From Trichosphaerium sp. ATCC 40318 (taxonomy: Eukaryota > Protista > Tubulinea), in contig JALMLS010000208.1 of assembly GCA_038496445.1 (NCBI GenBank), positions 197,233 through 261,232 on the forward strand: a stretch of DNA of 64,000 bases, written 5' to 3'. Of the stretch, positions 8,920-63,011 are shown piece by piece; positions within the stretch are counted from its first letter, which is position 1; the number at the start of each line of letters is the position of its first letter. A program made the position numbers and the translations under genes. The notes under the pieces are model-generated. The model was not told where the DNA came from, made no database searches, and saw only the letters and a program-made list of their open reading frames with translations.

Positions 8920-11068
8920 TTAACGTCGTCTCTTTAATGGTACAATATGTACTGAATTCTTTGCTTCATCTAGTTTTTTCCATCGTCCTAGTCTATGTTC
9001 TTTTCCAACAGCACAGCAAACAAATTTTTTTGATTTTGCAAACTTGATATCATTAATGAATCCAGTCACTGGGGCTTCAGCATACATTGTTACTGTACGC
9101 TCCTTCAAGCTACTATGCCAGAATTTAAGTGATCCAGTTGATGACCCAGAAGCAAAAACATCTGAAAATTTTATAGTCTCAACAGCAGAAATCCAGTCAT
9201 TGTGGCCAGAAGCAACCTAAGTTTTTTTTTCGATTAGTTTTTTTTTCTTTTTTTTTTCTTGCTTTGCTCATGACGTACTTCTATGAGTGGTCGTTTCTTT
9301 GATGTTGTCCATAGTCCTATAAGACCTGCTTGATCACCTGATACGAATGTATTTTCTGTTACAAGTGATAAAGCATCAATATGTGATTGTTTGTGTTTGA
9401 ATACAAGTTGAGTCTCATCCAAGACTTTCCAAAGTCTTGCGGATTTGTCCTCTCCTGTAAGACACGCCAATTAGTCTCAGTGCCTCTCAATCGCGTTTGG
9501 GCGAGTAGATACATACCTGCTGATAAAGCTAGATCTTTTGCAATAGAGTCAATGACATGAACTCCTGATTGATGACCGAATAATGTTTCTACATACATAC
9601 TTTGTTCACAACTCCAAACACGGACTGTTCTATCAGCGCTACCACTGTATAGTTCGTGGCTTAGTGGTTGAAAAGCAAGAGCCGTTACTTTTTCAGTGTG
9701 ACCTTGGAACGCAACATGAAGACTCTTTTGCCTAAAACAAGTCAGCAAAGCAATTGCGAAAAATGAAAAAAAAAAATTGATATTCTACGTACCGTGTATC
9801 CCATATTCTAATTGATTTATCTTTACCGCCAGTAGCCAAATATTTACCATCGGAAGACAATGCCATAGCGTAAATCTAAATGTAAATTTAATAAAAAATT
9901 TGTCAAAAAAAACAAAAAAAGATTCTGCATTCTTCTTGCGTCAAGCCACACAAGCCAACTTTTTTAGGTACATAATACAATCAACAAGATTTCATACTTA
10001 CCTCGTGTGTGTGGCCCTCCATTTTACCATATTTTGGCGTTCTAGCACCTCTATATGTCCATTTTTTCTTTCCAGCTTCAATATCCCACATGATTACACA
10101 ACAATCTTTTGAAGCGCTGAAAGCGATTGAGTCATCTGGTGATAGAGCGACTTGTGTGACCTATGATTTAGTTAGATTTAAGCGTAACAAGCTATAGCTT
10201 CAAATAAGCAGAAGTTTTGTAGCACCAAACGAAAAGAAAAAAAAAACGCTATTGTCATTTTTTCTACGCTCTGACAGACGCTTTAGTTGCTCAAACCAGG
10301 TATTATGCGTACAGGTAGTGAATGGCCTTTGAGTATACGATGTTTTGAAGGGTCTGTTTCTGGCTAAAGTAATTTGTTAGCAACGATCTTACAATTTCTT
10401 TGCGGCTGCGTTTCATTGTTCGCGCTAGCGTACCATAATTGAAGAACGTAAGTCTTGAAATGGCTCAAGGCCTTGTGCTCGCATCTCATCTTGGTATAGC
10501 TTTTCTATTAAATGTGTTAGTGGCGTAGTGCAATGCGTTAGACGTGATTAACAATTGACACGCTATTCACGTCAAAAACGAATAAAATAGCGTAGTGGTG
10601 CTGAGAAATCGTATCACTGCGCAAAGCGAGCGTCTCGCACCTTGTGTATCTCGTTCATCTAAATCTAAGTCTTTTATGTACTGTTTCGCGATTTTTAGCC
10701 TCTTGGCGTCAGCATTATCCTCTTCATACTCCTATATTACAATATTAATATGATTGGACGAAACTACAATAATAATTATGCGTGTAACTATGAGTTGTAG
10801 TAGTTGTACGATCTGGAGAGCGTTTTAACGCAATTGGTTTGTATTGACAAAATTGTTTTACAAACCAAGAAATTAGCGGTAATGATTTGCTACGCTTTGA
10901 CGCAGGTAATGGTTAGCGCCGCTCACAAAATAGCCGAAAGATTACTGTCACAGGCCAAAAATATTGATGAGAGTATGCACATACGCTAGATCCAGTATTT
11001 GTATAATCTCTGCTTCTTTTGCTACCAACTGGAACAAAAAATGTTTCAGGCCTTGTAGTTGGTCGCAT
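8920..11068 (-). CDS. RRP9: U3 snoRNA-associated WD40 protein RRP9/U3-55K
   Basis: N-terminal ADAKRLKIAKQYI motif; WD repeats (GHSLPVTQVAL, SSDGKYLATGGKDKSIRIWD, LYSGSADRTVRVW, YVETLFGHQS); diagnostic C-terminus AVGKEHRLGRW; ATG at 11068. Confidence 0.9.
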
Positions 11069-11325: not shown

Positions 11326-13005
11326 ATGGGTAGCGGCTACTCAGGTTGCTTGTCCTTCGAGAGCCGTACGACACACTCGAAGGCGATAGACTCCGTTATA
11401 AAACAAGAGATCAAAGAACGTAACCGCACTACAAAAATACTCATTCTGGGCGCAGCTGGAAGTGGCAAATCTACAATTTTAAAACAAGTCATATCGTTGT
11501 ACTCTGGCTTTTCAGACGTAGACGTTGCAAACTACAAAAGGATTATACAGGTGAATATCCTTTCGGGTATGAAGTTCCTTATAAACAAAGCAAAAAACAA
11601 CGGCATAAAGATACCACTCCGTCATAAGCCATACATGCGTATTATTAATGAAGCAAATGTATACGGTACGCTAAAAACCTCTTTTGTAAACTGACAGTTT
11701 TTTGGTTGTTTTGTGAAAATAGCGCCTTTAGTAAAACACCACTCCTTTACTTTCTATTGTCGTATTCTACAACATGAATGGAGAAATTGGACATTACGAA
11801 AAGACATTTGTTGCTCAAAACAACTGAAAACCCATCTAGTTTGTTTTTATGTAACGTTTACTGCGTTTTCCTTGTTTTCTGACTTTTAACAGACACAATT
11901 ACTAAACAACAACTCGACGCTTGTCATTTCCTTTGGCCTTTACGCTCTATTCAAAGCACATACGAAATACAGACGAATGATGCTGTTATACAAACACAAC
12001 ACTTAAAATACTGGATGGACAACGTAATTAGTAATTTAATAGACAAATACGACTCCTGGACGCCAAACGATAGAGATATTGTCCGTTGTAGACAACGTAC
12101 AACTGGAGTAAACGAAATGTCCTTTGACCATCTCGGAAAGCGATGGACGATTATAGATGTTGGTGGTCAAACAAACGAACGGAGGAAATGGTTACATGTG
12201 TACGTTTTTTTTAGGTGTTTTTCTTTTTCGGCGGTTTTTGTCCTTTTCTTGTATTCTACGCAAAAACCACGTATACACGCGTAGAGAGTATTTATTCAAC
12301 GACCAAAAGAACTACATTTAGCTTATTTTTTTTGTTCTCCCGTTTTGGATAAAAGGGTTTACGTCGGTCGCGTGTACGCGTGTGAATGCGTCCAAACAAA
12401 AATTAGGAGTTTTACTCTGCTTTTTGTAGGAAATTTACTGTATCTACTATTTTTACGACACTGTGTTCTTTTTTTTTGAGTTTCAACACATGGTAGCTTA
12501 TTTATTTTTTTTTTTCTTTTGTCAGGACACAATTTTTGGTCACGTCATCTTTGTCCTTACTTCTTTTCTTAGATTTGAAGGCACTCGTTCTGTTTTGTTT
12601 ACTATGGCTACAAATGAGTGGGATGTTCCTTGTGAAGAATGCGCTGGCGGCACAAAGTTGGATATGTCTTTGCGTATTTGGAAAGATCATATCAAGTCTC
12701 CTTTCTTCTCTAATGCATGTCTTATTCTATTTCTGAATAAGATAGATATTCTAAAGCAGAAGCTTTATGCTGTAAATTTTAAGGATAGCTTCCCGAACTT
12801 TCAGGGACAAGAGAGGGATGTTGATAGTGTTGTTTCATTTTTAAAAGAAAAGTTCTTGGCTGAGCTTGATAATTCAAAAGATGGGTTAAAACGGACTGTT
12901 TATGTTCATGCTATTAGCGCTATAAATAAGTCCGATGTATTTTCAGTTATGAAGGAAGTCCTTAGTAAGATTGAAATATACAAAGGTGGTCTTGATGTAC
13001 TATAA
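11326..13005 (+). CDS. Heterotrimeric G-protein alpha subunit (3 exons)
   Basis: MG N-terminus, P-loop GAAGSGKST, switch I RCRQRTTG, DVGGQ, FLNKID; introns about 11666-11892 and 12200-12572. Confidence 0.93.
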
Positions 13006-14337: not shown

Positions 14338-16921
14338 TTAAACAGTTAACAACAAACAACTGAGAGTCACGATTGTGGACACAATTAAAGCAATCGAATT
14401 ACTAGTATTAGCATTGTTACCAGGCGTTGGTTGTATAGGAGCTACTGGTGAGGCGGGTTGTGTTGGTACACTTGTTGTAGGCATAGAAGGAGCGACTGGT
14501 TCAGTAGGTGACATTGTCGTAGGAGGAAGCGTAGGAGGCAATGTTGTTGGTAATGTTGTAGGAGGTTGTATGGAAGTTGGTGGTTGAGTTGATGGTGTAA
14601 GTGTTGAAAGCGAAATAGGGAATGTTGGTGTATTTGTTGGTGCCACAGTAGTTGGGATAAGTGTTGTAGGAGGTTGAGTTGTCGGTGGTAGTGTAGGTGG
14701 TAACGTTGTAGGAGACAATGTTGGCGGTAACGTTGTTGGTGGCAATGTAGTTGGAGGCAACGTGGTAGGTGGTAAGGTTGTAGGAGGCAATGTTGTAGGA
14801 GGAAGTGTAGTTGGAGGTAATGTAGTTGGTGGCAAGGTTGTTGGAGGGAGTGTGGTTGGTTGCAATGTGGTAGGAGGCAACGTTGTTGGAGGCAGCGTTG
14901 TTGGAGGCAGCGTTGTTGGAGGGAGCGTTGTTGGAGGCAGCGTTGTTGGAGGGAGCGTTGTTGGAGGCAGCGTTGTTGGAGGGAGCGTTGTTGGAGGCAA
15001 CGTTGTTGGAGGCAGCGTTGTTGGAGGCAGCGTTGTTGGAGGGAGCGTTGTTGGAGGCAGCGTTGTTGGAGGCAGCGTTGTTGGAGGGAGCGTTGTTGGA
15101 GGTAGTGTAGTGGGCGGCAAGGTTGTAGGTGGTAACGTTGTAGGAGGAAGTGTAGTTGGAGGAAGTGTAGTTGGAGGCAATGTTGTAGGAGGTAACGTTG
15201 TCGGTGGAAGTGTAGTTGGTGGCAGTGTTGTAGGAGGAGCTGTAGTTGGAGGCAACGTTGTTGGAGGCAGCGTTGTTGGAGGGAGTGTGGTTGGTGGCAA
15301 TGTAGTTGGTGGTAGTGTAGTTGGAGGTAATGTAGTTGGTGGTAGTGTAGTTGGCGGTAAGGTTGTAGGTGGCAACGTTGTAGGAGGTAATGTTGTAGGA
15401 GGAAGTGTAGTTGGAGGCAATGTAGTTGGCGGCAAGGTTGTTGGAGGGACCGTTGTAGGAGGGAGTGTAGTTGGCGGTAAGGTTGTAGGAGGCAATGTAC
15501 TTGGAGGCAACGTTGTAGGAGGAAGCGTAGTTGGAGGCAAGGTTGTAGGAGGTACCGTTGTAGGAGGGAGTGTAGTTGGCGGCAATGTTGTAGGAGGTAA
15601 CGTTGTCGGTGGAAGTGTAGTTGGTGGCAGTGTTGTAGGAGGAGCTGTAGTTGGAGGCAACGTTGTTGGAGGCAGCGTTGTTGGAGGGAGTGTGGTTGGT
15701 GGCAATGTAGTTGGTGGTAGTGTAGTTGGAGGCAACGTTGTAGGAGGAAGTGTAGTTGGCGGCAATGTAGTTGGCGGTAAGGTTGTAGGAGGTAATGTTG
15801 TAGGCGGAAGTGTAGTTGGCGGTAACGTTGTTGGCGGTAGTGTAGTTGGAGGCAATGTAGTTGGCGGCAACGTTGTAGGAGGTAGTGTAGTGGGCGGCAA
15901 CGTTGTAGGAGGTAACGTTGTAGGAGGAAGTGTAGTTGGAGGCAAGGTTGTAGGAGGTAACGTTGTTGGCGGAAGTGTAGTTGGAGGCAATGTAGTTGGC
16001 GGTAGTGTAGTTGGCGGTAAGGTTGTAGGTGGTAACGTTGTAGGAGGAAGTGTAGTTGGTGGCAACGTTGTAGGAGGTAGTGTAGTGGGTGGTAACGTTG
16101 TAGGTGGAGGCGGAGGAAATGAGAATACCATAATTTCTACTCCAGACGGCAGCGTTTGTGCTGGTACTGTAAACCTAAAGCACCAGTAAATATGTTAAAA
16201 AGAGCAATTTTAACGCACGTAAATGAATTAGAATTAGATGAAATAGCTACTGGAGGCAATGTGAACGTAGATGCTACAAACTCAAATCCTAAAAAAAATA
16301 ACAGTAAGCACGTGTTTGCAATGCATAATTAACTGTAAAATCAGTTTTTTGTTTAATGTACATGTAAAGTATTAAATTGAGCGTATTAGCGCTCTTTGAC
16401 AATGAGAAAATGGAAATGGTGTATTTGGGAACGTGTTTTGGGTGATCCAAAAAACTATAATTGTAGAAAACTGAAAAACGTACCTAGAACGACTGGATCA
16501 TCCATTGTGCATGTCAGAACAGTATTTGGAATAGCAGTTCCCGTATTCATTACTTGTCTGTGTAAAATAAAGCTTGTAGACCCGACTTGAATACTGATAA
16601 CATCAGCAGCGTCAGTTGCAATATATACTTCGTTTGAATCGTCTGCAAAGAACTTTGGGTTGTTTGGTTCGCTTGATGACTCCAATACATTTTCATTTGT
16701 TGTTGAGCGTGTGTATGTACAAACACCTGCGTCGCCAACGCCTAGGTAGGTGTGAGATATCATATAGAGCAAAGAAAGAGAGCAAAGCAACTTTTCTTTA
16801 ATTGTTTTGTTCTAATTTTGTCTTTCTCCGTAATGACGGGTAATAAATGTGTACGTATTGAATATGATGTTGCTAAGAGACAACATAAAATTATTGTAAG
16901 CGTTAGAGGTGCTTTAATCAT
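14338..16921 (-). CDS. Secreted mucin-like surface protein with about 90 PPTTL repeats and GPI-like tail
   Basis: Signal peptide MIKAPLTLTIILCCLLATSYS at 16921; globular exons (GVGDAGVCTY...); long last exon of PPTTL repeats ending NSIALIVSTIVTLSCLLLTV*. Confidence 0.85.
14720..16110 (-). repeat. Coding 15-bp minisatellite (PPTTL)n
   Basis: About 90 tandem 15-bp units varying mostly at synonymous positions; homogenised block about 14880-15100. Confidence 0.95.
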
Positions 16922-22912: not shown

Positions 22913-23938
22913 TTACAAGGAATTACGTCTCACAGTTGTTACTGGATGTTCAGATCTCTTACCATCAACATATATTCTGCCTAGCTTAAGATGTCCATCC
23001 TCATGCCACACAGTGCATTCACCATATCTCTTTCCTTTAATATACATTGTTTGTCTCTGAATTTGACCATTTTCATACCATCTCTTTACCTCACCATGCT
23101 TCTTACCTTGAACGTACATAGCTTGGCATCTGAGTATACCATGAATTGTATTCACCATTTCTCTTTCCTTCGATATACATTGCTTGTATATGGAGTTGTC
23201 CATTCTTATACCATAGTTTGCATTCACCATTCTTCTCACCTTTTATGTATATAGCTTGATCCATTATTATACCATTCTCATACCACCAACAGTATTCACC
23301 ATTCTCCTTTCCATTAATATAGGTTGTTGTTAGCTGATTTTGTCCATTCTCATACCACTGTTTATGTTCTCCAGTCTCTTCCCCATCAGTATACATTTTT
23401 TGTACTGCAAGCTGTCCGTTTTTATGCCATGTCTTTATCTCACCAGTCTTCTTGTCATTAATCCAGGTTTTTGCGACACAAGTTGTCCATTCTCATGCCA
23501 TATTTTTTTCTCACCATTCTTCTTGTCATTAACATACATTGTTTGATATTTAAGTTGTCCGTTCTCATACCACTGCTTTAGCATGCCTTCCTTTAGTCCT
23601 TTTACATACACAACGTCTAGACAAGGGTTTCCTCCTGTGTACCAACTGTTGTACTTACCATGTTTTTTATCATTATTGTACCATGCTTGAAACCATAGCT
23701 GTCCGTTCTTATACCACCGTTTCATCATTCCGTGTTTTTTACCGTCAACCACCATTGTCTTATTTAGAACACGACCACATGGATACCAAGTAATCCAAAT
23801 ACCGCGTTTGTTCAGACTAGTATTGTAATGTGTGTTAATAGCAGCCGTTTTTGATAACACGTGGAACTTATGAAATGTTTCCTTGTTGAAAGTACATAGA
23901 TATTGTTGAAGTTCATATGGAAGTTGTAGAAGTGACAT
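22913..23938 (-). pseudogene. Frameshifted F-box-like + MORN-variant repeat gene (intronless)
   Basis: Paralog of 51716-52687; 1-nt deletion near 23470 and an apparent 11-nt deletion between TGGTAT direct repeats near 23140 split it into three ORFs. Confidence 0.85.
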
Positions 23939-26819: not shown

Positions 26820-29279
26820 TCAATTGAATCGCACAACAGATTCGTTAATCGATCTTTTGCATCTAACAAATGAAATATTAGAAAAACAAACATATTTTCG
26901 AATCCAAAAAAACTCCAGTACCTTTTGGTATGCCATTCACTGTGATACTTTTTATCTTTGTCAATCTTTTTATAGAATCTGGCAAACCTTTCCTAAATAT
27001 CATTAGACTATGAAGTATACGAAGACTCAAGGCTTACGGTTTTAGTGGTAATCTACTCAACCACAAAAGTGCCAAGTTAACTAAATTCCCAATATTTTCT
27101 GGAAGAGATTTAAACTTGTTTTCACATCGTCTACGAAAGAAACGTGTTAATTTGTTGGGTGTTACTATTCACTTTATCCAAATATGTACCTAATATGATG
27201 TCCAACTCCTTCACCCAAATAAAGCTCTGTAAGCTTTGTAAGGTTGCATATTTCATCAGGAAGTGTGTTTAGTTTATTTCCCAATAAGTTAAGTTTCTCC
27301 AAGTTTACTAGGTTCCCAATACCTTCACCAAGTGTCTCAATACCGTTATCAACTAAATTTAGTAGCTTTAAGTTGGTAAAGGAGAACAAAGTTTCTGGTA
27401 GAAACTGCAGGAGTGGAGTAGTGTTGTATAAGCTCAAAACTTGAAGTGACTCAGTTTTTCTGTCAACTTGATCAATTTCATCTGGAAGTACTAGCACACA
27501 AGATTGTTCATATAATCCTTTAAAAAAGTTTCCGTACAATGGCGAAAGATCACCTAGTAAAACTGTTAATAAAAAGTAGCTAATTTTAGAACAGAAAACT
27601 CTGAGAGCGGAAAAAACAGTATGCGATTTTCTTCTTTCTTTCAAAACGAGTTTTCGTATTTGTTTGGATATTTACCTGAGTAATAAGTACATTTATCACT
27701 ATGTCGTGATGGAGTAATAAAAGAAGAATACCTTAAAGGCGAAATAGCTTTATGTTGACCGTCTTCTCCATTGTCTTGTTCTAAAACAAATACTCATTAA
27801 AATCTTGTAAAAAAAAACAGTCATAAAGTGATCAGTACCTAGCATTATTGATTCAAGTTGTTCCTTAAGATTACCCTCAGAATAATCTGGTAATTTACTT
27901 ATCCATTGACGTATTGTAGAACTAAAACAAGGATTTCTGAAAGGCTTGTATGTTTCGGTTTCAGGTAAAGGTATCCCTCTAACTTTTATCATGTACAAGT
28001 TTGTCATGTATGAGTTAGAAGAGTCTACTCTTATTTTACCAAGCAATCCAACCTTTAAGTACTTTCCAACTGCATTAAAAGGCTTCAAGATAAAGTGTTT
28101 TTCTCCTAAAGAAACCATACATAAGCATCTCATTCGAGAACAAACAAACTAATACTAATACGACAACAGATTTTCAGAAAAAATATCACGTGATAAATGG
28201 TTTGAATAGAACTCAGCTTATAGCAAAAGTAGTCTCTATAAGTTTTTTTAGCGTACCGGACGATCTACTGTATTGGTACGCAATTGATGTTGTTTGAAAA
28301 TCAGTTGGAGAAGATCCAACAGAGAAAGTTACTTCACGAGGTGTATACGGGTTTCCACCATAAATTTGTTTCACCAATAAAGATACCATAAGAACAAGAG
28401 AAACTTCTGAATCCATTATTTCGTAAATTACATAATCAGTAGAGTTTGGATCAAAACTACCAGTAGTGCTATGCGAAAAAGGGTGAGAAGCTGATTGGTT
28501 TTTTTTAGAAAAAGAAAATAAAAGGAACGTGATGCAACAGTTCGATTCAGTCAAATGCTTCCCTTTGTCCACCCACAGACCCACAAACCTCACGTTGGTA
28601 AACCCAGTGGAAGCGCTAACGCCCTTTTAATACTGGTTCTGTAGACATGAGGTATGTGGGTCTGTGGGTGGACAAAAGGGAAGCATTTGAATGAATAAAA
28701 TTGCACGTGTTCTTTGTTTTACAAAAACTGTACTGTTGAATTTAGACAAACGAGAACAACTTTAAGTTCGTTGATGATTTGTTATACCTGTACAAGTTCC
28801 CAGCCAGGCTATTTTCGGGACCTTGGAATCGGTAATCTTCACTTGAAGCTCTATTTTTAAACAAGTTGCGTTAGTCCTGTTAAAACAGCGTGTACGCTTA
28901 TTTCCTTACTTTACAACTGATAACTCCATAGGTTCCTTTGCACACAGGCGTTCAGTACACTCTTTCTCTGCGATTGAGTTAAATTAAACCGTGGGTGCCT
29001 TTTAAACTATGTACCCATAAGCTCCATATCGTAAGCTTGTTTACAAGAGTCCCAGATGCCGTTTATAGCTTTTGTGTTTTTACTTACGCTAATTAAAACG
29101 AATAAACAACGTTAGTTTTATGTAAAATAAACGTACTTTAGGAAGTGTCGGCTCCACAGCCTGTCGCTGTCAGATATTTCTTTGAACAAAGTGCATACGC
29201 ATGCACACGTTGTTAAACTGCTTGGAGGCAGCGGCCATAGTATCAATTCTATTATTTCTTCTGGTAGTTGCTCCATCAT
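26820..29279 (-). CDS. F-box protein with central galactose-binding/discoidin-like region and C-terminal leucine-rich repeats
   Basis: Exon 1 MMEQLPEEIIELILWPLPPSSLTTCACVCTLFKEISDSDRLWSRHF (F-box); middle ASSEDY...STTGSFDPNSTDYVIY...GKYLKVGLLGK; LRRs such as NLEKLNLLGNKLNTLPDEICNLTKLTELYL. 3' end approximate. Confidence 0.8.
28545..28696. mobile_element. MITE-like fold-back element inside an intron
   Basis: About 50-bp inverted repeats TCAAATGCTTCCCTTTGTCCACCCACAGACCCACA / TGTGGGTCTGTGGGTGGACAAAAGGGAAGCATTTGA; more GC-rich than flanks. Confidence 0.7.
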
Positions 29280-41483: not shown

Positions 41484-42103
41484 TAAACAACTTGTTTTCG
41501 TACTTCCTATGAGTTGAGTGCCACAAGTATGAGTGATACCGGATGAAGTGACTTCAATATACCATATTTAGATATATTCATGTGTCCACAAGAAAAGGGT
41601 GCATAACGCATATAAACGCTTTCCTATGTTAGCATACGTGCTTACGTACCCCAAAGGTCAGGTTTATAGTTTACAATGTCATCCACATGTCTTGAGGCAA
41701 TTTACGTCTATTGCAGCTTGCAAACGCGATTTTAGATACTCCATCGCTAATTACTTCATTTGCTGGCTGGCACGCAGTAAGCGCTAAAACTCATAGAAAA
41801 TACGTACACAGTATACTACTTGTATTAACACAATAAGTATCGCTACTAGGCGACCAAGCACAGTCATTTACACAGTTGCACCCTTCAATGAAGACAAAGC
41901 GAGTAAGTGAGCAACTTAGTTGCGCCAGCATTGTGACTTTAATGAAAACAATTTACGTTAAACTTGTTATCCAGTGTTTTATGTACATAAAAACTTGATT
42001 GCTCAAGTGTATTTCAACCCTCGCAATCTTAGTGTAGGTGTAAAATACCATAAAAGGAAGACAATTTGATGAAATTTAATATAAAAAACGGAAATAGACA
42101 AAA

Positions 42104-45100
42104 ATGGTCACTGAAATTAAGCAATTACAGTACAACACTAAACAGTACGCCTATAAAGCTTGGCAACTTAGTTTTATGGCCACTACTGAAAAGCCACGCC
42201 TTGGTAAAACCTATAATTGCGCCTGCTGTTTCAGAAAAATTAAACATGGTGAAATACGCTATGGATGCACCTCTAGTTCATGTACAAAGACTAGTTTTTG
42301 CGTTGAATGTAAAAACGCGAATATTCATTCAAAACATACTCTTTTCCCTGAAGAAGGTACTTATTGGCTAATCAGACGCCTAAACTATCGTTTAAAGTAT
42401 AGTTTGATTCGAAATGTTAACGCCTGGTTAATTTAGTGTTTAAATACCATCGAAAACACCTAGTTTCAGCTGATACAGTATCAGGATCACTTTGGTACGT
42501 CAGGCTTTACGGTTGTTTGTTAATTGAATCGTAACGTATCAAAAAGGAAGGCGTTCCTTCTATACGCCAATAGACCAGCTATTGGTTATCAAACACCTGA
42601 AATGACAGAACCAAAATGGCTTTCTTACAGAGATCTACATAAGCTTGTTTTTCGATTTCGTTGTGTTCTTTCAGAACGTCTTGGATTATGTCGTGGAGAC
42701 TTTGTTGGTATTTCAAGTGCTAATTGTATAGAATGGATAATAGCTGACTTGTCTTGTATTACACTTGGAATAATCCCCGTGCCAATACACGTGCCATTTG
42801 GTACTTGATTTTTTGTAATTATTTCCTCATTGCCTTTTTGTTTATGCTATGGTCACGTTAATGTACGATGTCTTTAGATGCAACCCAAATATCGACAGTT
42901 GTAGATAAGACAAAAATGACGTGTGTTGTATGCTCAAAGGCTTTGAGTGAAAAGGCAAGTTTAAACTGTCCTGAAATAGAATACCGACATACTTGAGGTA
43001 GTTTCTGAATGTTAGAGAGCAAACAGATTCGCTAAAGAAACTGGTTGTGATAGGAGATGTTGCTACCGACAAGAACAAGAATATATATTCCTACACATCG
43101 CTTATCGACGATATACCAGAACCTACAGATGAGCAACTAAAGTTCTTTATCGATCCTTCTTCACCGAACGATATATTTGCTGTAGTGCCAACAAGTGGCT
43201 CCACTGGCGTGCCAAAGGCAACTACATATTTCTAATAGTTGTAGATATATCTAATCTTGCTTGTTAGTGCGTAATGTTTAAAGTGGGTGCTTATCTATGT
43301 GATACTCTTCGTGTTTTTTATGGACAAGGAAGCAGTTTGCTACATGCTCCTTTTGCTTATAGTACTCGAAGAACAATAATTAGATCACTTATTCATGGAA
43401 CACGTCTTGCCTTATCAACTAATGCAAGTATACGTTGGTGTCCCCTTTATGTCTTTCTAAAAAATAAGTTAGGGATCAGCTAACGTGTTTCAAGATATGT
43501 ATGTGTTCAAGCCAACAAGAATAAGTGGTATGTTTTTTATTCTTTGAAATACATTTACTTGTTGTTCGTACTTACTTGAGCGGTAAGGTGTCCCTCGATT
43601 TTGGCAAATCTTATATTTAAGATATCAAGATCTACTTGAGGAATACAAAAGAAGACATAAAAGTCATACAGTAAGTAGCACTGCCGTTATAAAGTGAGTT
43701 CACAGGACAAAAATTTTAGCCTTTTGATGAAAATGTTGTGCGGAAAGATTTTTACGAGAGGCTTGGCGGACAGCTTTCTGGTATTTCTATTGGAGGTGCA
43801 TCGGTACCAAGAAAGATATTGAAATGGATGAAGAGGTACAAAGCATTTTTCATTCAAATCTAACGCACGTGGTGTAGCACATTTGGCGAAACGACGAATA
43901 TTTATGAAGGTTATGGTATAACTGAAATCGGCGGTATTTATTCAAACAATAAGATCAAATCAGCTGCACAAGTTAAACTTGTTGATTGGCAAGAGTATAA
44001 AGTAACAGATAAACCTTATCCACGTGGTAAATATCGTCAAAAGTTCACACAACAAAAAAAGGAGGTTTCTTTTTCTATTTCAGTAACTCTTTGTAACAGG
44101 TGAGATTTGTGTTAAGAAACCATCCATGTTCTGTGGTTATTATGGAGACGAAGCAAAGACGTAATTTACAGAAATGCTACTTGTGCAGTATTAATAAACT
44201 AAAGGGCTGAGGTTATTGATAAAGAAGGCTATTTCCACACAGGTGATATAGGAAGACTTGATAATGGTAACCTTGTCATTGTGGATAGGTATGTGTTCAA
44301 ACATACTACTAAATTCATGTACTCTAAACATTGTTTAGGAAAAAGTCGTTGTTCAAGCTTTCTCAAGGAGAGTTTGTTGCGTATGTACAAACAAATATGT
44401 TTTACTTGCATATATTTATATTGTTGTAGGCCTGAACGTTTGGAGAATATTTACGAACGGAGTGAGTTTATAGATCAGATATTCATTTGGGGAAACGTGC
44501 AAAAGAGTTATATTATTGCAGTTATCATCCCAAATGAGGAAGCTGTCCTAAATTGGATTCAAAACACCAAAGAACCTCCAGTGCGTTGCATTAAAACCCA
44601 AATCCCTTTTAATATGGTTTGGGTTAGAAGAGTGTTGATGACGCCCTCACGGATAAAAGGTTGATAAATGATATTATGGATACTATAAACGATCTTGCTA
44701 AGAAAGCACACGTGCGTCATTGAGCATCATTTCTTGAGATGAGTTGTTTTGTGCTAAGTTTTTTAAATCTTTACTAGGTCCGGCGCTATGAAATACCTTC
44801 TGGTATAATACTCTCAAACCACAGGTGGACACCGATGAATCAATTATTAACGCCTTCTCTAAAGCTAAGAAGACCGTTACTGGAAAAACATTATCGTACT
44901 TCATTAGAAAAAGAAATGGATGTTATAGACAACCAAAGTGGTTCTGTTACAGCTAATACTAAAGGTACAATGGTGGGTTATTTGTGGGTTTTCTTTTATA
45001 AGTATTAACACTAATTAAGCTACTGGAATGGCGTCAATCTTAAATAGAGTTCTACAACTCGATGCAAACAGAGATATTTCAAAAGCAGATGATTTTTCTT

Positions 45101-47092
45101 CTCTTGGCGGAGATTCAATGGCAGCTGCTCAAGTAAGATATCTTCACAACTAACTAACGTATGTACTTTAAATAGCTTGTTAAGATTGTTAAAGATGAAA
45201 TGGACGTTGATATTTCTGTACAATCGCTTTACGAAGTTGAAGGGTCAGTCTAACAAGCTTGTTCTCTTTTTTTTCTTTCTTTTGATTTTGTCTTTTGTGC
45301 TTCACTCAGAACAAGTACGTTGTTAATATAACATCTAGACTACGCCAACTTGCAGATTACGTTGATGGTGCTTCATTACTACCGAGTGAGCCTGTAGAAG
45401 TGAATGGAGACTTACAAATCTTCGACTGGGCTTCTGAGACCTCCCTTGATGATGATTTCAAACCAAACACGTCTTATAGCGGCCCTAAAGGAAGCGATGT
45501 ATTTCTCACTGGTGCTACAGGATTTGTTGGGTGTTTTCTTTTGAAGGAATTATTGGATAAAACAACCTCTAAAATTCTATGTTTGACACGTTTGAAAGAG
45601 TGTTCAAAAGATCAATCTCTTAATGAGAAACTTGCGAAAGAAAGGATTGAATCTACTGCAAAAAAGTTTGGGATATCTCTAGAAGGATACAACGAAAGAA
45701 TTATACCTGTACACATCATGCACAAAACGACCTTTTTGCTTTTTGTTTTTATTCTGTTGACTAAATGTTTTGTTCAAGATTGTTGGAGATTTGTCACAAC
45801 TGAGGTTTGGACAAAGTGACAAAGACTTTTCTACGTTGGCTTCACGTATAAATACTATATATCATTGCGGTGCTATGGTGAATTTTATAAAGCCTTACTC
45901 AGCACATAAACCCGCAAATGGTACCACAAAAACGTCTTTCTCAAAATACTTACTTTTTACCTATAATAGTGACAGGGACACGTGAGGTTATTAAACTTGC
46001 TTCTATTGGATATCCTAAACCTATACACCATATATCTACATTATCAGTATTCCCACCTGGCTTTCCCGTATGTTAACAGACTTTAACGCCAATGCTAACC
46101 TAAGGTTACAGATAAAACGAGAGGAGGAAATTACTGACAAAACTCATAAAATGAGTGGATACGGGTACCTTTTTCATAGAATGTTTGCGTTTGATATGGG
46201 CTAACAAGTAGTAAGGTTAAGCAAGCTTGTTTCTGAAAAATTGTTGTTAAAGGCAAAAGCAAGAGGACATCCAGTAGTCGTGTATAGACTTGGCACAATA
46301 ACAGGTGAGATTGACTGATTTCTGATTTAAAGAAAAAACCGTTATTCTCTCTATACTTACTTTCTTTGCAATTTTTACCACTTACTTCATATTCTTTTCA
46401 TTTCCTTCTTCATCTTCTGATTGTTTCTTTGCGTTTAAAAAAACCTGACAGTTTTTTGCATTATTTTGTTGTTAACTTTTTACTTGTACAGGCCACTCTG
46501 TCACTGGCAACTGCAATGAAACAGACTATATCAATAGACTAATTATTGGTATAATCAATGCAAAGTGTATACTGTCATATGATAAAGCAGCATATAAAGT
46601 CGTACCTGTCGATACATGTGTACAAAAGATAGTTCAAATAAGGCACAAGAAAAACTTTCTTTTGTGTTGCTCTTTGCTAACTATGTTGATAGTTTGATGC
46701 CTGCATTGAAACACTACATATTCCATATAGATCATGAAGGTGAAACAAAGTTATCTCTTGTAATAGATCATGCAAGGAAAAGTGGATATCGCATTGATAA
46801 TGTCGGTATTAAAGATTTTCGAGAAAAAATTAAGAACAAATCAAACCCGCTCTGCGTGTTACAGCATGTTTTCAAAGATGGACACAAATGGCCTAGACTA
46901 GTTACAACAGTGTAAGTAACCTTACCAACCCTCATTTCTTTTATGCTAGCCCTTACCAATTGTAGATGTGACAACACCAATGAAGCATTGAAAGAATCTG
47001 GATTAGAGTTTCCTAAACTTGATGTTAAGCTGATTGATGTCTACTTCAATTATTTTGAGTCCAGAAATCTTATTCACAAGGATTCTAAATAA
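42104..47092 (+). CDS. Carboxylic acid reductase-like NRPS-type enzyme (adenylation-thiolation-reductase) with N-terminal ZZ-type zinc finger; about 20 exons
   Basis: CACC...RYGC....C....FCVEC.....H..H; YANRPAIG, TSGSTGVPK, YEGYGITE, TDKPYPRGEICVK, YFHTGDIG, DRKKSLFKLSQGEFV; carrier FFSLGGDSM; reductase VFLTGATGFVG, YHCGAMVN, GYGLSK. Confidence 0.9.
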
Positions 47093-48089
47093 TAAATTGA
47101 GTTTTGCAACAGTAACCCAACCAAAAACATTCTTCGAAAATATGGGCATAAACTTGAAAGCGTTATCTTGCAAAACCATGTTAAATACCTTTCGGTTAAC
47201 AAGGTTTAATATCTTATTAGTGTACCTTGTTTTATTTTGGTAAGTACCAAATGTTAGAACCCCTGAGCATTGATTTCTACCCAGCATGCTATCAAAGAAC
47301 GATTTTCTTTGTAAGAAAAGTTTATTTACTCACTTAAATAATGCCAGCGAGTTTACGTATATCGGCCTAAGGAAATATGCTTATCCTCTCAAAGCGCTTT
47401 CTAAAAACATGCCAGATATCACGTTCTTGTTTTTTTCGTTTGCACTCTTTCTTTTTTTTCAACAGATGCCAGAAGATCAGATTCGTTTTTAAATCAAATT
47501 AGAATCTATTCTAGTTTACTCTCTTTGACGCACCAAGAATACTATAACAGGTATGTCCATTTTGTTATAACATGTTTGTGGGAAATAGACATGATCTCTG
47601 TCTTTGTCAAGCCAAAACCTGCCAAGAAACAGTCAGCAAAACGGAAGAAAACAATGTGTTTCGTGTTAAATCCAGTACTTTGGTACATTACGTGCTACAA
47701 ATTGTGTTACCAAACAAGATGAGATTTCCTAGGCTTAAATCCGTAGTTGTTCTAACAACATGTATCAAAACAATTGATCAAACAACGTTATAGTATCGTA
47801 GTACCTACAGGGAGCTGTTTTCCTTCCCATTGCTGCCTTACATGCTGTTTAAAGCCACGGAAACAATGGTTTTCTGTGAAGTAAGCTATGTCATTGATAC
47901 CTCCCCCACACGTAGTAGTGCAGCGTTGGGATTAGTTCAACAGCAAAAGCGTCCACCTCATAGTAGCAAAAAAGGAAGTCTAACTTAAAGCTGTTGTAAG
48001 TTTGGCACCTGGTTCTTTTTTGACTTAATTTTTTTTTTTTCAACCAGGAACTCGCTCAATGGTGTTCATTCAATTTATTTATCCGTACA

Positions 48090-51715: not shown

Positions 51716-52687
51716 TTATTTATTTTTGTGTACAGTGCTTAAGTTTGTTTCTGGATATTTACATCTCTTTCCATCACCATACATTCTTTTAGCCTTAAGA
51801 TGCCCATTCTCATACCACTGAGTACATTCACCATCCAACTTTCCATCAACATATCTTGCGTTTACCTTACGCTGTCCATTCTCATACCACATACTGTATT
51901 CACCATGTTTCTTTCCTTCGACATATCTTTTTTGTCTCCGAAGTTGTCCATTCTCATACCATCTCTTGACCTCACCATGCCTCTTACCTTGAATGAACGT
52001 AATTTGGGCCTTGAGTATACCATTCTCATACCACCAACAGTATTCACCATCCTCCTTTCCATCAATATATGTTGTTTTTAACTGAATTTGTCCGCTTGCA
52101 TACCACTGTTTATGTTCTACAGTATCTTCCCCCTCAATATACATTTTTTGTACTGCAAGCTGTCCGTTTTCATACCATGTCTTTACCTCACCAATCTTCT
52201 TGTCGTTAATACAGGTTTGTTGCTTCGCAAGTTGTCCGTTCTCGTGCCACATCTTTTGCTCACCGTTCATCTTGCCATTAGTATACATTGTCTGATACTT
52301 AAGTTGCCCGTTCCTGTGCCACTGCTTTCGCATGCCTTCCTTTAGTCCTTTTACATACACAACGTCTCGACAAGGGTTTCCTCCTGTGTACCAACTGTTG
52401 TACTTACCATGTTTTTTATCATTATTGAACCATGCTTGAAACCATAGCTGTCCGTTCTTGTGCCACTGTTTCATCACTCCATGTTTTTTACCATCAACCA
52501 TCATTGTTTTACTTTGCACAGTACCACGTCTATGCCAAGTAATCCAAAGACCTCTTTTGTTGAGATTGTCGTTGTAATGTGTGTTAATAGCAGCCGTTTT
52601 TGATAACACGTGGAACTTATGAAATGTTTCCTTGTTGAAAGTACATAGATATTGTTGAAGTTCATTGGGAAGTTGTATAAGAGACAT
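51716..52687 (-). CDS. Intronless F-box-like + MORN-variant repeat protein
   Basis: N-terminal LIQLPNELQQYLCTF followed by about 11 repeats of 24 aa (KHGxxxxWYENGQ). Confidence 0.9.
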   Translation of the reverse strand: MSLIQLPNELQQYLCTFNKETFHKFHVLSKTAAINTHYNDNLNKRGLWITWHRRGTVQSKTMMVDGKKHGVMKQWHKNGQLWFQAWFNNDKKHGKYNSWYTGGNPCRDVVYVKGLKEGMRKQWHRNGQLKYQTMYTNGKMNGEQKMWHENGQLAKQQTCINDKKIGEVKTWYENGQLAVQKMYIEGEDTVEHKQWYASGQIQLKTTYIDGKEDGEYCWWYENGILKAQITFIQGKRHGEVKRWYENGQLRRQKRYVEGKKHGEYSMWYENGQRKVNARYVDGKLDGECTQWYENGHLKAKRMYGDGKRCKYPETNLSTVHKNK

Positions 52688-56697: not shown

Positions 56698-57776
56698 TTA
56701 AGCATCTGTAAACTTGTTCTCTTTGATGATTCTTGTTTTCTTTGGATCAGGAACAATACCAATAGGATTCTTTGTTGAGTGAGATTCATACCACATGCCG
56801 AGCTTATTAGAAACAAGGCGAAAGAATATTCTTCTTCCTGATTCTTTCATTGGTAACGCTTCATGCGGTGTTCTATCTGTTAACCAATACATAGACCTAC
56901 CTTTCAGTAACGACATTCTCTCTCTTGGCAAGGCATTCTTCAAGTGCTCCAAATCACCCAAAGATCCAATAACTGATGTTCCATCTTTTTTATCCTCAAT
57001 GCTTACGTCCCAGATAGCGCACGTGTCATCCAAATTTGTAGCAATAAACATACCATCTTTTAAACCATATCCGCCACCCCAAGCTTCATCATAATATCCA
57101 TGTGAGGTTCCTAGTTTACCCGGAAACTCAATATGAACACCTGGTCTTCGTTGTGTTTTACCTTTCTCAACAAAAGACTCTTGTATTGTTAAGAAGCATA
57201 TTGTACCTTCTTGCTGCTTGTCTACAGTAAGTGCGATATCTAGCAAGTATATGTAAGGCCACAGATCTTCAGGGAGTTGATCCTTGAAGAGTTTTTTGTC
57301 CATCTTTAGAGGCATCATATTGATATCAATATCTTTTCCTGAAGGTGAAGGAAACTTGCTTGAAATGACTTTTGCGAATTGAGTTGGTTCGTGATCCCAG
57401 GATTCACAGTTTAGCTTGTCGATGATGGCGAAGTATGCCTCAAAGTAACCGTAACCCCATGTACCTCTTGGTGGGAGTTTAATGAACGGGTTGTAGTGTT
57501 CTTTGTTGTATTCAAGTACAAATTCCCAAATACGCTTTATGACAATATAGCCAACGCCTGGACTCATGTTTAGCTGAAATAAACTTGTTTTGAGTCGTTT
57601 TTTTAACAGGCGCTTAAAACCGCTTTATATTGCTACTTGCGCGTAGAAATTGTACCTTTTAGTACTGATAGGGCATTACCATCGTCATAAACGCCCATTA
57701 GAAAGATACGTGCCATAGGGTCCAAGCGAACAATTGGAGGTGCGTCATAGCCGCGAGAAGGTGCTACGTGCAGCAT
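56698..57776 (-). CDS. Putative 2-oxoglutarate/Fe(II) oxygenase-like protein (5' exons may extend to about 58.1 kb)
   Basis: RRPGVHIE (HxE), TPHEALP (distal His), RRIFFRLV (Arg); upstream exon RIFLMGVYDDGNALSVLK|GVGYIVIKRIWEFV joins in phase. Confidence 0.6.
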
Positions 57777-58422: not shown

Positions 58423-60344
58423 ATGAATACAACGCATCACAGCACTATTCTATGGTTTCTTTTTGTATTGTTTTCATTTCAAGGTACCTAGTGATGTTTC
58501 CGTTTTGAGTCTTCGAGCAGTTACACTTGTACCTTCCTACTTTACGTTTAAACCATTACTAGCATTTGCTTTGGAGATGAATACATGGGGTGACTTACGT
58601 CCCTTGGGTATGGAACAAGTACTGGAGAATACTGAAGAAAGAATTCGTGACCCTGTCGTTGCTGTTGGTAAAATACCCGGCAAGGGAGATGTTGTGTGTT
58701 TAGCTGTGCGCACCGCTAGTACTACTGTGGAGGGATATGTGAACATAACTGGATTTGCTATTATGATGGGTACAATCGAAGGCAAGTCACGTGTTTTTTT
58801 CACATCCACGCTGGCAATTAATATGGTGTTAGAAATTTCCGACGGAGCTGCCAGTGTTCGTAAAGTAGTGTCAGTAGAAGTGGATTACTTACAGATTGTA
58901 TATGGAAACAATGAATTTGCTGTGTTAACTCTGGATACAGTTAGTCCTTCAACATTCGCCATGAACCTACGATTTGTTGGGTACAATGAAGGTGTACGTA
59001 CTTTATCTCAATTTAATTGAGCTAACCCTCATCTGTGTAGCTTACAATTTCAGAACCTCTTGAACTACATACTAGTAGCGCCAAATTTAGGGCGGATTAT
59101 GGTTTCACCTTTGCTAGCTGTATGTTTCTATAGCAAAGCAACATGTATTGATAATAACCTGATACTTTAGCTACAAAAACGTACATGATTATCAAAGGAG
59201 GTTTTATTCCTATCTTCGTGAACGAAGACAAACAAGTCCGAATGAGCGACAAAAACTGTACGTTTATAACAACACTTTCTTATTTACTACCCTTTTTAGT
59301 TAATAACCAAGGAGCTGAAAGACTTACTACCGCTGTTGCCATGGATGACTGCTTCCTTTTCTTATATGTTAGAAGTCATTCAATCTTTTCAGGGTCTACC
59401 ACTTATCCCTACGCCGACGTAAGGATATAAGCAAACATGTAAAATACTTGTAGTATTTCTAACTTATCAACTAGGTACTTCTTCCTGGTTACATAAGCAG
59501 CTCTACATATTTTTATAACAATGTAGCATATGACCCAGTATCCAAACATGCTGCTGTGTTTGTATACTTCCTCAGTGATAAAAGCCTGAAGCTTAAGCTG
59601 CTTTCATTGAATTGTACACACGAAAACTCACTACAAGTTAACGAAACTCTCTTGTCAAAAGAACGTGACATTGACATAAATCCAAGAAAAGTGGTCATAG
59701 CTGCTTCTTCACATGATGACAAAGCGTTTATTGCGTCTGTGATAGAAACGAAAGGACGTAGAAAGACAGTTCTCTATTCCATATCAGGTGAAAACCATGT
59801 AATTTCAAATGTATTACCAAGAGAACCGTATCATCCTATAACTCAAGATGTAGCTTGGATATCCCATGTCGGAACACGATGTGGTGTCGGTATTGTACGC
59901 ACTATAGACTAATAAGTGTTTTATTAACCGCCATTTAAGGTTGTGGCACAAATCCAAAAGACAGTGTATTTTTTTTTCGCTGATGATCAATATTTATGTC
60001 CTCCTCCACCTACTCCTCGTCCGCCTCCCCCAACGTATTCTCCATCTTTACAACCTCCTACAAACCCATTATCACCAATGTCAACCCAAACCCGGTCTCC
60101 ATCAGTACAACCAAGTGTCAACTCGCCAAATGATTCAAACGTTCCAGGTGAAGAACCTCCAACAAACATCCCTGATCTACCTCCAATGACGTCTAGTGCG
60201 CTTTCGGTGAAAATCAACACAAGGTTGTTTGCCCTCTCAGGGTGTTTGATAATATGTCGTTTACTGAGTGTAATGCATTCAAAACAACCAATAAACGCTG
60301 CAATCATGATTCCCCAAAATGTAATTTGGATTTTGAAAATCTAA
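58423..60344 (+). CDS. Secreted surface protein with Pro-rich stalk and hydrophobic C-terminus, paralog A
   Basis: Signal MNTTHHSTILWFLFVLFSFQ|AFA; PVVAVGKIPGKGDVVC, IVYGNNEFAVL, VAYDPVSK; CPPPPTPRPPPPT stalk. Confidence 0.65.
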
Positions 60345-61117: not shown

Positions 61118-63011
61118 ATGACTATCACATCATTTTATACGCTATGTATAGTTGCCGTACTGTTCATGTCTGCAAGTACGCCTTCAATTTTTCGGAGTCT
61201 TTTTTTTTATGTGGATTCTTACAAAGGATTTTCTAGGCGCTACGACTTTCAACACTTGGACTGATATGCGCTCAGCAGGGCTTGATACTTTTCTATACGC
61301 TTCGCCTGAGGATGAAGGTTTAGAAAATCCTGTAGTCGCTACAGGTGTTATTGAAGGACATGGACAAGTTGTTTGCTCGTTGTCGACCATAATGGAAACT
61401 CCTGATACTAGCAAGCGGAAGACAGCTCCTCGAAGGTCTGCAGGATTATTGATAACAGTAGGTTCAATACAAGGTAACAGTACAAAATAAGTTCGGCTTG
61501 GATTAAAACTTACTAAATTTAGATATCCAGACCAACAGTAGCACCACTATTAGGCTTGATAAAGAAAGAGAACCAAGAGCTGTTAGTGTCATACACGGTA
61601 ACAATGAGTTCGCTATATTGTATTGCGCTTCTGTTTTCCCAAAAAGAAGAGTTCCGGCCAACATCCCATGTGCAGTTCGTTTTGTAACATCAAACAATGG
61701 AGTACGCAAAAAATCAACACAGAAGACTCGACACTGGCTAACTATTTATTTTTTGTAGACGTTTGAAATTTCCTCAGCTCAAGAAATTATAACAGGAAGC
61801 CCGTCTAATAGCGAGTATGGATTCACTTATGATTCAAGTACGGCAAAGTTCTAACAAACAAAAAAAAAACCAGAATTTTCTTCTTTTTTTTTCTTACTTT
61901 TCTTCTTTGTAGAGACCAATAGCTACATGATTGTACAACAAGTTGATGGCTAATTCCAGTTTTTATCGACCAAGTTAGCCGAAATGAAACTATGTCACCT
62001 AAATATGGAGCAAACTGTAAGTGGCTTTTTAAGCGTTGTACTAAACGAAGCTCACTTTTTTGTAGTCACACAAAACTCAGTACAATTTGGTGCCTCTGCA
62101 GTTGTTGATGGGTGCTATATCAGTACGTTTAAAAATACTGGAGTAAATGGAATCTTTGTAACAGCACTTAACCAAGTTGGGAATGAGGTACGCTCTTGAC
62201 TAGACAAAATCAATCAACGACTGAAGCTGACCATTTTTACAGGTTGTCTATCAACAACTTCTTGTTAATGATACTCAAATTACCGCGTATGGAAGTCTAG
62301 CTTATGATCCAATATCTAAGCAGTTTGCTCTTCTCTATGGTAATGGCACAAACGATGCTGTGACTATTCGTATTCAACAGTTCTCACTTGACTGTAATGC
62401 AACCAACCCAAGTGTCACAATTCTATCAAATGTAGCGCTTACAAATGATACCGAGTTTACTAATGACGAATCACGTGCTTTCACAATCATAAATACAACT
62501 GCGTATGAGTCATCGTTTTTAGCAGTCTACACTGTTGATCCATTCAACCCGAAACTATTCATGGCATCAATTGACAGCAGCAACAACATTGTGAAGAAAG
62601 AGCTACCTACAACATTAAACAACAGTCCATCAAACCCTGATATACGTGGTTGGATGATCAATCTTCTAACTGTGGAGCAGCATTGGTAAGCGCTTTTGGC
62701 CCATAGTTTTTTTGCAATCTACTAACTGTTTATCAAAGGTTGTTGTTCAAACTACAATACAGAACAACGAAGTGAATACAACAACAGAAATAATGGTTAC
62801 AGACGATTCACTTGAAGTCTTTTCATGCCCACCGCCGCCAACTACAACCCCTCCATCTACGTCCTCACCAACAACCGAACCTCCCACAATGGAGCCGCCT
62901 GTGTCTACTTCACCAACTCAAGCAAATTCTCCGTCCTCAGATACAAGTGAAGCATCTATTCCAAAGGTTTTCGCAATGTGTTGTATTACAGCAATCGCAC
63001 TTCTTGTTTGA
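61118..63011 (+). CDS. Secreted surface protein with Pro/Thr stalk and GPI-like tail, paralog B
   Basis: Signal MTITSFYTLCIVAVLFMSA; PVVATGVIEGHGQVVC, VIHGNNEFAIL, LAYDPISK; CPPPPTTTPP stalk; ends KVFAMCCITAIALLV*. Confidence 0.7.

Follow-up and report, generated by a model that had tools for sequence, protein, structure and literature searches.

Does the locus at positions 42104-47092 (+ strand) of a 64,000-nucleotide (nt) stretch of Trichosphaerium sp. ATCC 40318 DNA (contig JALMLS010000208.1; this whole stretch is called the window below) encode a single protein in which a ZZ-type zinc finger precedes an enzyme related to the carboxylic acid reductases (CARs), and is such an architecture peculiar to this genome? 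A first-pass annotation of the window had proposed a protein of this kind, and had stated that the architecture was not recognised. The results of our analysis favoured, with a probability of about 0.65, the reading that the locus is intact and belongs to a eukaryotic ZZ-CAR family, its product being made up of a ZZ finger with two zinc sites, an adenylation (A) domain of the fatty-acyl-CoA-synthetase/FadD9 type, a carrier (T) domain and a reductase (R) domain of the short-chain dehydrogenase/reductase (SDR) type. The gene adds a new, divergent member to a family that was already present in the databases but is uncharacterised, and its architecture is not unique.

Gene structure

We assembled the exon chain from the raw sequence, with each exon translated alone, and searched and scored the gene exon by exon, each exon separately. 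The results showed that the chain runs from the ATG at 42104, preceded by an in-frame TAG at 42095-42097, to the TAA at 47090-47092, which is overlapped by an AATAAA hexamer (47091-47096), with no stop codon when all junctions and phases were checked by script. The outer coordinates of the first-pass annotation (42104-47092) were therefore correct. Within this AT-rich window (GC content of about 0.36), the gene is divided by 24-25 introns of 42-187 nt (median of about 50). The preferred coding model (42104-47092, + strand) has 26 exons, 3399 nt and 1132 amino acids (aa), and an alternative model over the same interval, with a single intron between the finger and the A domain, comprises 25 exons (3429 nt, 1142 aa).

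All of the introns were GT-AG except for two GC-AG introns of 50 nt. The intron at 43218-43267 (+; AAG/GCAACT...TTAG), placed from the raw sequence and the alignment, was the only [GT/GC]-AG solution that avoided an in-frame TAA at 43233, and its removal yielded TSGSTGVPK/CVMF with no insertion or deletion relative to the homologues. The intron at 46643-46692 (+; AAG/GCACAA...ATAG) was placed by stop avoidance and spacing, and this choice gave a distance of nine residues between IVxxS and FH, as in the relative P0148. The share of GC-AG introns was unusually high for one gene (two, possibly three with 42955-43001, of 24-25), and all of these, the possible third included, were about 50 nt long and began at an AAG/GCA donor.

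The gene is real, intact, intron-rich and eukaryotic. Bacterial contamination was ruled out by its 24-25 spliceosomal introns. It is without a human counterpart, its relatives being amoebozoan and sponge proteins. No paralogue was found within the 64-kb window, and a search of the window against Rfam at the gathering threshold returned zero matches.

The zinc finger of exon 1

Exon 1 (42104-42356, +), delimited by donor score, BLASTP and hhalign, encodes an N-terminal leader and the finger, with HTLFPEE at its end and another in-frame ATG at 42176. The finger core (42218-42337, +), defined by the family hidden Markov model (HMM), the structural model and alignments, reads C39-x2-C42...R52-Y-x-C55-x4-C60...C66-x2-C69...H75-x2-H78. 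All eight zinc ligands (C39, C42, C55, C60, C66, C69, H75 and H78) were present. When an HMM of the N-terminal ZZ domains of the family was run against the 1505 six-frame segments of the window, the exon 1 segment was the only match (E=1.3e-5), the next best segment being at 0.27. Exon 1 was also matched by BLASTP to the N-terminus of the Cavenderia fasciculata protein (E=4e-6) and by hhalign to the N-termini of the family (E=4e-5), and the family ZZ profile itself matched the solved ZZ domains of Nbr1, p300/CBP, MIB1, p62 and HERC2 at 1e-13 to 1e-7.

We then modelled the region 42182-42415 with AlphaFold2 (AF2), using an alignment of 12 ZZ-family rows. The predicted local distance difference test score (pLDDT) was 83-91 over the finger. 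The top Foldseek matches of this model in the PDB were almost all ZZ domains, among them those of p62, CBP, p300 and HERC2, with probabilities of 0.97-1.0 for the best twenty, and the model could be superposed on the p62 and CBP ZZ structures with a root-mean-square deviation of about 2 Å and a template modelling (TM) score, on the target, of 0.6-0.77.

The sole Pfam match of exon 1 was to zf-UBR (E=0.05). A UBR box (PF02207) was rejected because only positions 1-41 of the profile of this 69-position, three-zinc-site box were matched, and because a family member with a true ZZ match (P0155) showed the same weak cross-match beside it. The Cys/His cluster of the second half of a UBR box was not found in any frame of 42357-42546. 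We conclude that the finger of exon 1 is a divergent ZZ.

Joining of the finger to the enzyme

Exon 2 contains an in-frame stop at 42521-42523 and no in-frame ATG before YANRPAIG, and therefore an upstream exon is required. For the splice sites we used a scoring matrix derived from the remaining sites of the gene. The donor at 42356 (AAG/GTACTT) was the strongest after the finger open reading frame (ORF), with a score of 7.3 against a gene median of 6.6, but the junction 42356/42357 does not share the reading frame of either AG acceptor of the A-domain exon (42547 and 42551), so that direct splicing to either was rejected. The first-pass annotation had proposed that a ZZ exon at 42170-42357 is spliced in frame to the A domain; an in-frame path does exist, but not directly from that donor. 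The acceptor at 42579, which is in frame with donor 42356, was also rejected since its use would delete the AFLLYANRP motif conserved in the family. The two donors that permit a single in-frame intron, 42396 with acceptor 42547 and 42415 with acceptor 42551, had scores of 1.6 and -0.6, below those of every other donor of the gene.

Enumeration of the in-frame, stop-free paths gave 105 solutions, the best of which joins 42356 to 42470 and 42494 to 42547. This path contains a predicted 25-nt micro-exon (42470-42494, +) that would encode A-DTVSGSL-W, split codons included, and would bring donor 42356 and acceptor 42547 back into frame by means of a second donor (42494/GTACGT). Its flanking introns would be of 113 and 52 nt, the latter length being typical of the gene, and its four splice sites (7.3, 5.8, 7.2 and 4.0) all fall within the normal range of the gene. 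The exact route from exon 1 to exon 2 is thus predicted, and every in-frame model would keep the ZZ finger fused to the enzyme.

Domains and catalytic residues of the enzyme

The motifs quoted in the first-pass annotation were all found on the + strand, in open exon segments with Pfam matches. The A domain (42547-44964, +), spread over 14 exons and delimited by Pfam, NCBIfam NF041592 and alignment, is of the ANL type found in long-chain acyl-CoA synthetases (LACS) and FadD9. It contains the motifs AFLLYANRPAIG, TSGSTGVPK, EGYGITE, TDKPYPRGE (interrupted by an intron), YFHTGDIG, FKLSQGEFV and TPSLKLRRP. Pfam AMP-binding matched the segment 42524-42805 (E=5e-13), and NF041592, the NCBIfam model for "carboxylic acid reductase", was the only NCBIfam match for exons 43879-44025, 44431-44580 and 44778-44963, which were collinear along the model; these scores are those of single exons (15-34 bits each), while the curated cut-off of 1300 bits is that of a whole protein.

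The carrier domain (45020-45243, +) occupies two exons and was identified by Pfam PP-binding on the segment 45028-45150 (E=7e-5) and by alignment, the phosphopantetheine attachment serine of LGGDS being at 45115-45117. The R domain, an extended SDR thioester reductase (45339-47092, +), occupies eight exons and was delimited by alignment, by Pfam NAD_binding_4 on the segments 45295-45816 (E=5e-10) and 45770-45982 (E=1e-10), and by the NCBIfam thioester reductase model TIGR01746 (1e-11, 2e-10 and 6e-4). The T(S)GxxGxxG and GYxxxKxxxE motifs and the catalytic Thr/Ser were all found: TGATGFVG lies at 45508-45531, the Thr of HISTLS within exon 45970-46067, the Tyr at 46160-46162 and the Lys at 46223-46225, GYGLSKLVSE being divided by a 51-nt intron (46164/46216 junction). 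The best match of exon 45295-45816 in the representative library was of 39% identity over 65 aa, to hybrids of polyketide synthases and nonribosomal peptide synthetases (PKS/NRPS), with no close homologue. The order of the Pfam domains, the collinear NF041592 and TIGR01746 matches and the continuous exon chain showed that A, T and R lie in this order in one polypeptide. Together with the family-ZZ match on exon 1, this collinearity supports the proposal that a CAR-like enzyme of A-T-R type and an N-terminal ZZ-type finger belong to the same gene.

Alignment of the exon peptides, one by one, to 22 proteins (ZZ-CAR relatives, mycobacterial CARs and LACS) showed that the A10 lysine and the essential hinge Glu (FKLSQGEFV, exon 44339-44380) were retained. 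The histidine of the CAR PxxH motif was absent: the region reads P-F-A-Y, in alignment with MPLNH of mycobacterial CARs and LPLAH of LACS, and a tyrosine codon (TAT, 43358-43360, +) stands at the position of His237 of the Neurospora crassa CAR (NcCAR). Published work identified five residues as essential to NcCAR, whose activity is abolished by the H237A substitution (PMC5826065). Equivalents of four of the five (Glu433, Ser595, Tyr844 and Lys848) were present in the window gene, the fifth, His237, being the tyrosine. The P-loop TSGSTGVPK is followed by a cysteine instead of a glycine (PKC rather than PKG). The first-pass description of the domains as all apparently intact fits the stop-free chain and has to be qualified at these two positions. 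In about half of the eukaryotic ZZ-CAR relatives, the position of the PxxH histidine is V, I or L (the relatives involved in this departure are P0161, P0163, P0164, P0270, P0271, P0274 and P0282). The loss of this histidine looks like a feature of the lineage rather than decay, the catalytic activity of the window protein being putative.

Recurrence of the architecture

We gathered relatives by a word search with P0135, the Acytostelium protein that was the best full-length homologue in the library, and by a second one with P0164. At least 15 relatives, drawn from Dictyostelia, from Balamuthia and Clydonella, from environmental eukaryotes and from the sponge Sycon ciliatum, combine ZZ, AMP-binding, carrier and NAD_binding_4. 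These include Heterostelium album PPL_05336, Cavenderia fasciculata DFA_09189, Acytostelium subglobosum SAMD00019534_123670 (with an Acytostelium paralogue), Dictyostelium purpureum DICPUDRAFT_157845, a partial Balamuthia mandrillaris protein named "LACS 7", Clydonella sp. transcripts, Sycon ciliatum XP_065187235.1 ("carboxylic acid reductase-like" in RefSeq) and several metagenome and Logan proteins. The Pfam ZZ scores of the relatives ranged from 6.5e-9 to 3e-3. In one of them the whole protein is a single uninterrupted ORF of 1309 aa on a 71.5-kb contig, and the fusion of ZZ and enzyme is therefore independent of splicing predictions.

The window gene has the three features that define this family, namely an N-terminal ZZ, the linker motif AF.LY..R.AFG.R and A-T-R. 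The linker motif was recognised from AFLLYANRPAIGYQ at the start of exon 42547-42800, which aligns with AFDLYAHRYAFGYR of P0164. Comparison of summed exon-wise tblastn scores showed that the ZZ-CARs ranked first, with P0152 at the top (392 bits, 38% identity), followed by bacterial CAR/FadD9 proteins (120-280 bits, 25-30% identity), with LACS last (108-167 bits). The next-best matches of the eukaryotic family itself were mycobacterial CARs and then LACS.

The unfamiliarity of the architecture did not, then, amount to novelty, since at least 15 relatives share the domain order. The architecture is recurrent in public sequence data but not already characterised: a search of the literature library for papers on ZZ combined with CAR, and on amoebal or sponge CARs, brought up no description of a ZZ-bearing CAR.

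Two relatives depart from the common front end. P0158, a close relative from a Logan contig (1273 aa), has an N-terminal ZPR1 jelly-roll (PF22794, E=6e-16) instead of the ZZ, and the front-end module is therefore exchangeable. In P0277 of Balamuthia mandrillaris, the ZZ at residues ~56-100 reads RYKSFEVPDFDLC, with Ser/Val in place of the second Cys pair; one zinc site appears to have been lost, while the residues of the acidic pocket are retained.

In the Sycon ciliatum orthologue (OZ025896.1, 1001-28317), which extends over 27 kb, the introns are long, and one interrupts the ZZ after residue 67. Of the 16 introns mapped, a single one occupies exactly the same position in the window gene and in the Sycon gene (44288, corresponding to Sycon residue 719, phase 2), with about 0.2 expected by chance, and this shared position is not informative. 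The Sycon intron that follows the equivalent H-T-x-x-x-E-x motif interrupts the same codon as that of the window gene, in phase 2 rather than phase 1, and it is followed by a separate linker exon of 25 codons, a layout comparable to that of the window gene.

Possible role of the finger

The first-pass annotation had drawn an analogy with ZZ domains that bind N-degrons and histone tails. In p62 the N-terminal arginine is bound by D129, D147 and D149, and binding is lost when any one of the three is changed to lysine (PMC6197226). At these positions the window copy has Ala40, Lys62 and Ser64. All three acidic residues are retained in the dictyostelid copy P0152 (ICDGC...CPDFDLC), and in most of the family the D149 equivalent is conserved and the D129 position is N or D. 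The analogy, whether with N-degrons or with histone tails, is consequently unsupported in the window copy because the three p62-type acidic residues are absent, while it may apply to some members of the family. We infer that the ZZ of the window copy is a structural or partner-docking module and not a reader of N-degrons. That it localises or regulates the enzyme, as had been suggested, is conceivable.

Weighing of the readings

If the locus is indeed an intact ZZ-CAR, the reaction may be outlined by analogy with bacterial and fungal CARs. A phosphopantetheinyl transferase would prime the serine of LGGDS, a carboxylic acid, in all likelihood a fatty acid or another hydrophobic acid, would be adenylated by the A domain at the expense of ATP, the acyl group would move onto the pantetheine thiol and the R domain would reduce the thioester with NADPH, releasing an aldehyde. 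The putative substrate and product are thus those suggested by homology. The ZZ finger would have been inherited from the family ancestor, its acidic pocket for a protein N-terminus being lost in the window copy.

Several observations weigh against this reading. Pfam ZZ (PF00569) gave no match to exon 1 at E≤1, and a phmmer search of the PDB with exon 1 returned UBR boxes only, at E=0.17 (range of 0.17-0.5). The Foldseek E-values of the model were only 0.03-0.1, and the match to the ZZ fold is in part circular because the rows of the AF2 alignment are themselves ZZ proteins. The exon junctions are predictions from genomic DNA alone. The tyrosine at the PxxH histidine and PKC for PKG also mean that adenylation may be altered or weak. 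The description of the Cys/His module as a ZZ, made in the first-pass annotation, accordingly stands on the family profile and the eight ligands and falls short at the Pfam model and at the second Cys pair, which is CxxxxC, a two-residue insertion relative to the CxxC of the ZZ pattern.

If the A domain were catalytically altered or dead, the protein would not be a carboxylate reductase but a reductase of acyl groups supplied in trans, a scaffold or pseudoenzyme, or an enzyme whose activation chemistry is different. This we regard as unlikely. It would account for a tyrosine at a position whose alanine mutant abolishes NcCAR activity (PMC5826065) and for the PKC of the P-loop, and the V, I or L found at the place of the PxxH histidine in about half of the family suggests a family-level shift, not decay. 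However, the other core motifs of the A domain, the A10 lysine, the hinge Glu, the carrier serine and the triad of the R domain are retained, and the lack of any frameshift or stop in 25-26 exons argues for purifying selection on the whole protein. A related doubt concerns the product, since the NAD_binding_4 ("male sterility") fold is common to alcohol-forming reductases and the best library matches of the R exon were terminal reductases of PKS/NRPS and not CARs; a four-electron reduction releasing a fatty alcohol, as in some terminal R domains and fatty acyl reductases, might be envisaged. We hold it to be quite improbable, given that the A domain and the A-R collinearity fit the CAR model NF041592, that actinobacterial CAR/FadD9 proteins are the nearest outgroup to the family and that characterised CARs stop at the aldehyde (PMC5826065).

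It is very improbable that the Cys/His ORF lies outside this mRNA, as a separate small gene or a chance ORF, with the true first exon elsewhere. The frame conflict of donor 42356, the weakness of the single-intron donors (1.6 and -0.6) and the failure to reach the Pfam ZZ model would be explained in this way. The ORF, however, lies 190 nt upstream on the same strand and is the only family-ZZ match in the window, the ZZ comes first in at least 15 relatives that include uninterrupted ORFs and transcripts, the micro-exon path has four good sites, and exon 2 offers no in-frame ATG of its own before YANRPAIG. The intact ZZ-CAR remains our preferred reading. A broader conjecture goes beyond it: ZZ-CARs could form an undescribed, ancient eukaryotic class of carboxylate-activating reductases outside the bacterial and fungal subtypes, in which the ZZ would dock the enzyme on a protein N-terminus or partner and aim acyl or aldehyde chemistry at that protein, the absence of the PxxH histidine from about half of the members would be the sign of a changed activation chemistry and the window copy, having lost the acidic pocket of its ZZ, would be a derived one. 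We consider this speculative and, as a whole, improbable.

Significance

CARs are valued as biocatalysts, and those characterised are bacterial or fungal. A eukaryotic branch fronted by a zinc finger is conserved in amoebae, a sponge and this genome, and no function has been described for it. If the ZZ does direct or regulate the enzyme, this would be a new way to control aldehyde production, and the change of His to Tyr or Val at an "essential" position would inform CAR enzymology. For the window itself, the outcome is mainly a corrected annotation, that of a real and intact gene of an existing family.

Other features of the window

At 14338-16131 (-) lies a 597-aa ORF made up almost entirely of about 100 tandem PPTTL pentapeptides (mucin-like), with a hydrophobic tail at its end; the local GC content there is 0.48, and the GC skew 0.6. 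Another PTT-rich ORF, of smaller size, is found at 2587-2994 (+). Two single-exon MORN_2-repeat genes were found at 51716-52687 (-) and 23435-23938 (-), the longer one with a Pfam E-value of 1e-42. Over their first 165 residues the two products show 78% identity, suggestive of a duplication that took place recently inside the window. The ORFs at 58463-59020 and 61152-61490 (+) share a region of about 80 aa (33% identity, E=2e-10), suggesting a local gene family.

The 289-aa single-exon ORF at 56698-57567 (-) belongs to no Pfam family. Its relatives occur in numerous environmental contigs, among cnidarians (Hydra, Aurelia, Sanderia) and in transcriptomes of foraminiferans (Bolivina, Nonionella), with the best matches, at 41-48% identity, coming from the foraminiferan transcriptomes and the cnidarians. 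Exons of a G-protein alpha subunit lie at 11326-11694 and 12463-13005 (+; Pfam G-alpha, 1e-17 and 3e-28), with WD40 (9359-9748, -), F-box (6222-6683, -) and LRR (27174-27644, -) exons near them.

Comparison with known systems

Comparison of the window gene with the eukaryotic ZZ-CARs, its best tblastn relatives, showed the same order of ZZ, linker, LACS/FadD9-type A domain, carrier and NAD_binding_4, while identity was only about 27-38% over the aligned exons. The window ZZ differs from that of most ZZ-CARs by its CxxxxC second pair and by being without their N/D and Asp residues. The linker of the window protein falls far short of the length seen in dictyostelid ZZ-CARs, and the gene has 24-25 short introns whereas some of its relatives are intronless.

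Bacterial CARs (Nocardia and Mycobacterium CAR/FadD9; NF041592; EC 1.2.1.30) share with the window gene the A-T-R order, CAR-specific motifs at TDKP.PRGE, at KLSQGEFV and in the A10 region, the catalytic Thr/Tyr/Lys and TGxxGxxG, at 25-30% identity. They have no ZZ, an N-terminal helical segment of about 50 aa standing in its place, and they have the PxxH histidine where the window gene, which is eukaryotic and intron-rich, has a tyrosine. Fungal CARs, compared by way of the published residues of NcCAR (type III), follow the same catalytic logic, with the tyrosine of the window gene at the His237 equivalent. The A domains of fungal CARs are considered to be NRPS-like, whereas that of the window gene is LACS-like. 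LACS (ACSL) have an A domain of the same ANL subfamily, with the FKLSQGEFV-type A8 motif, but no carrier, reductase or ZZ, and they scored below the other groups against the window gene. The ZZ domains of p62/SQSTM1, p300/CBP, HERC2 and Nbr1 have the eight-ligand cross-brace and the conserved R-Y/F that are also found in the window finger, which differs from p62 in having Ala, Lys and Ser at D129, D147 and D149.

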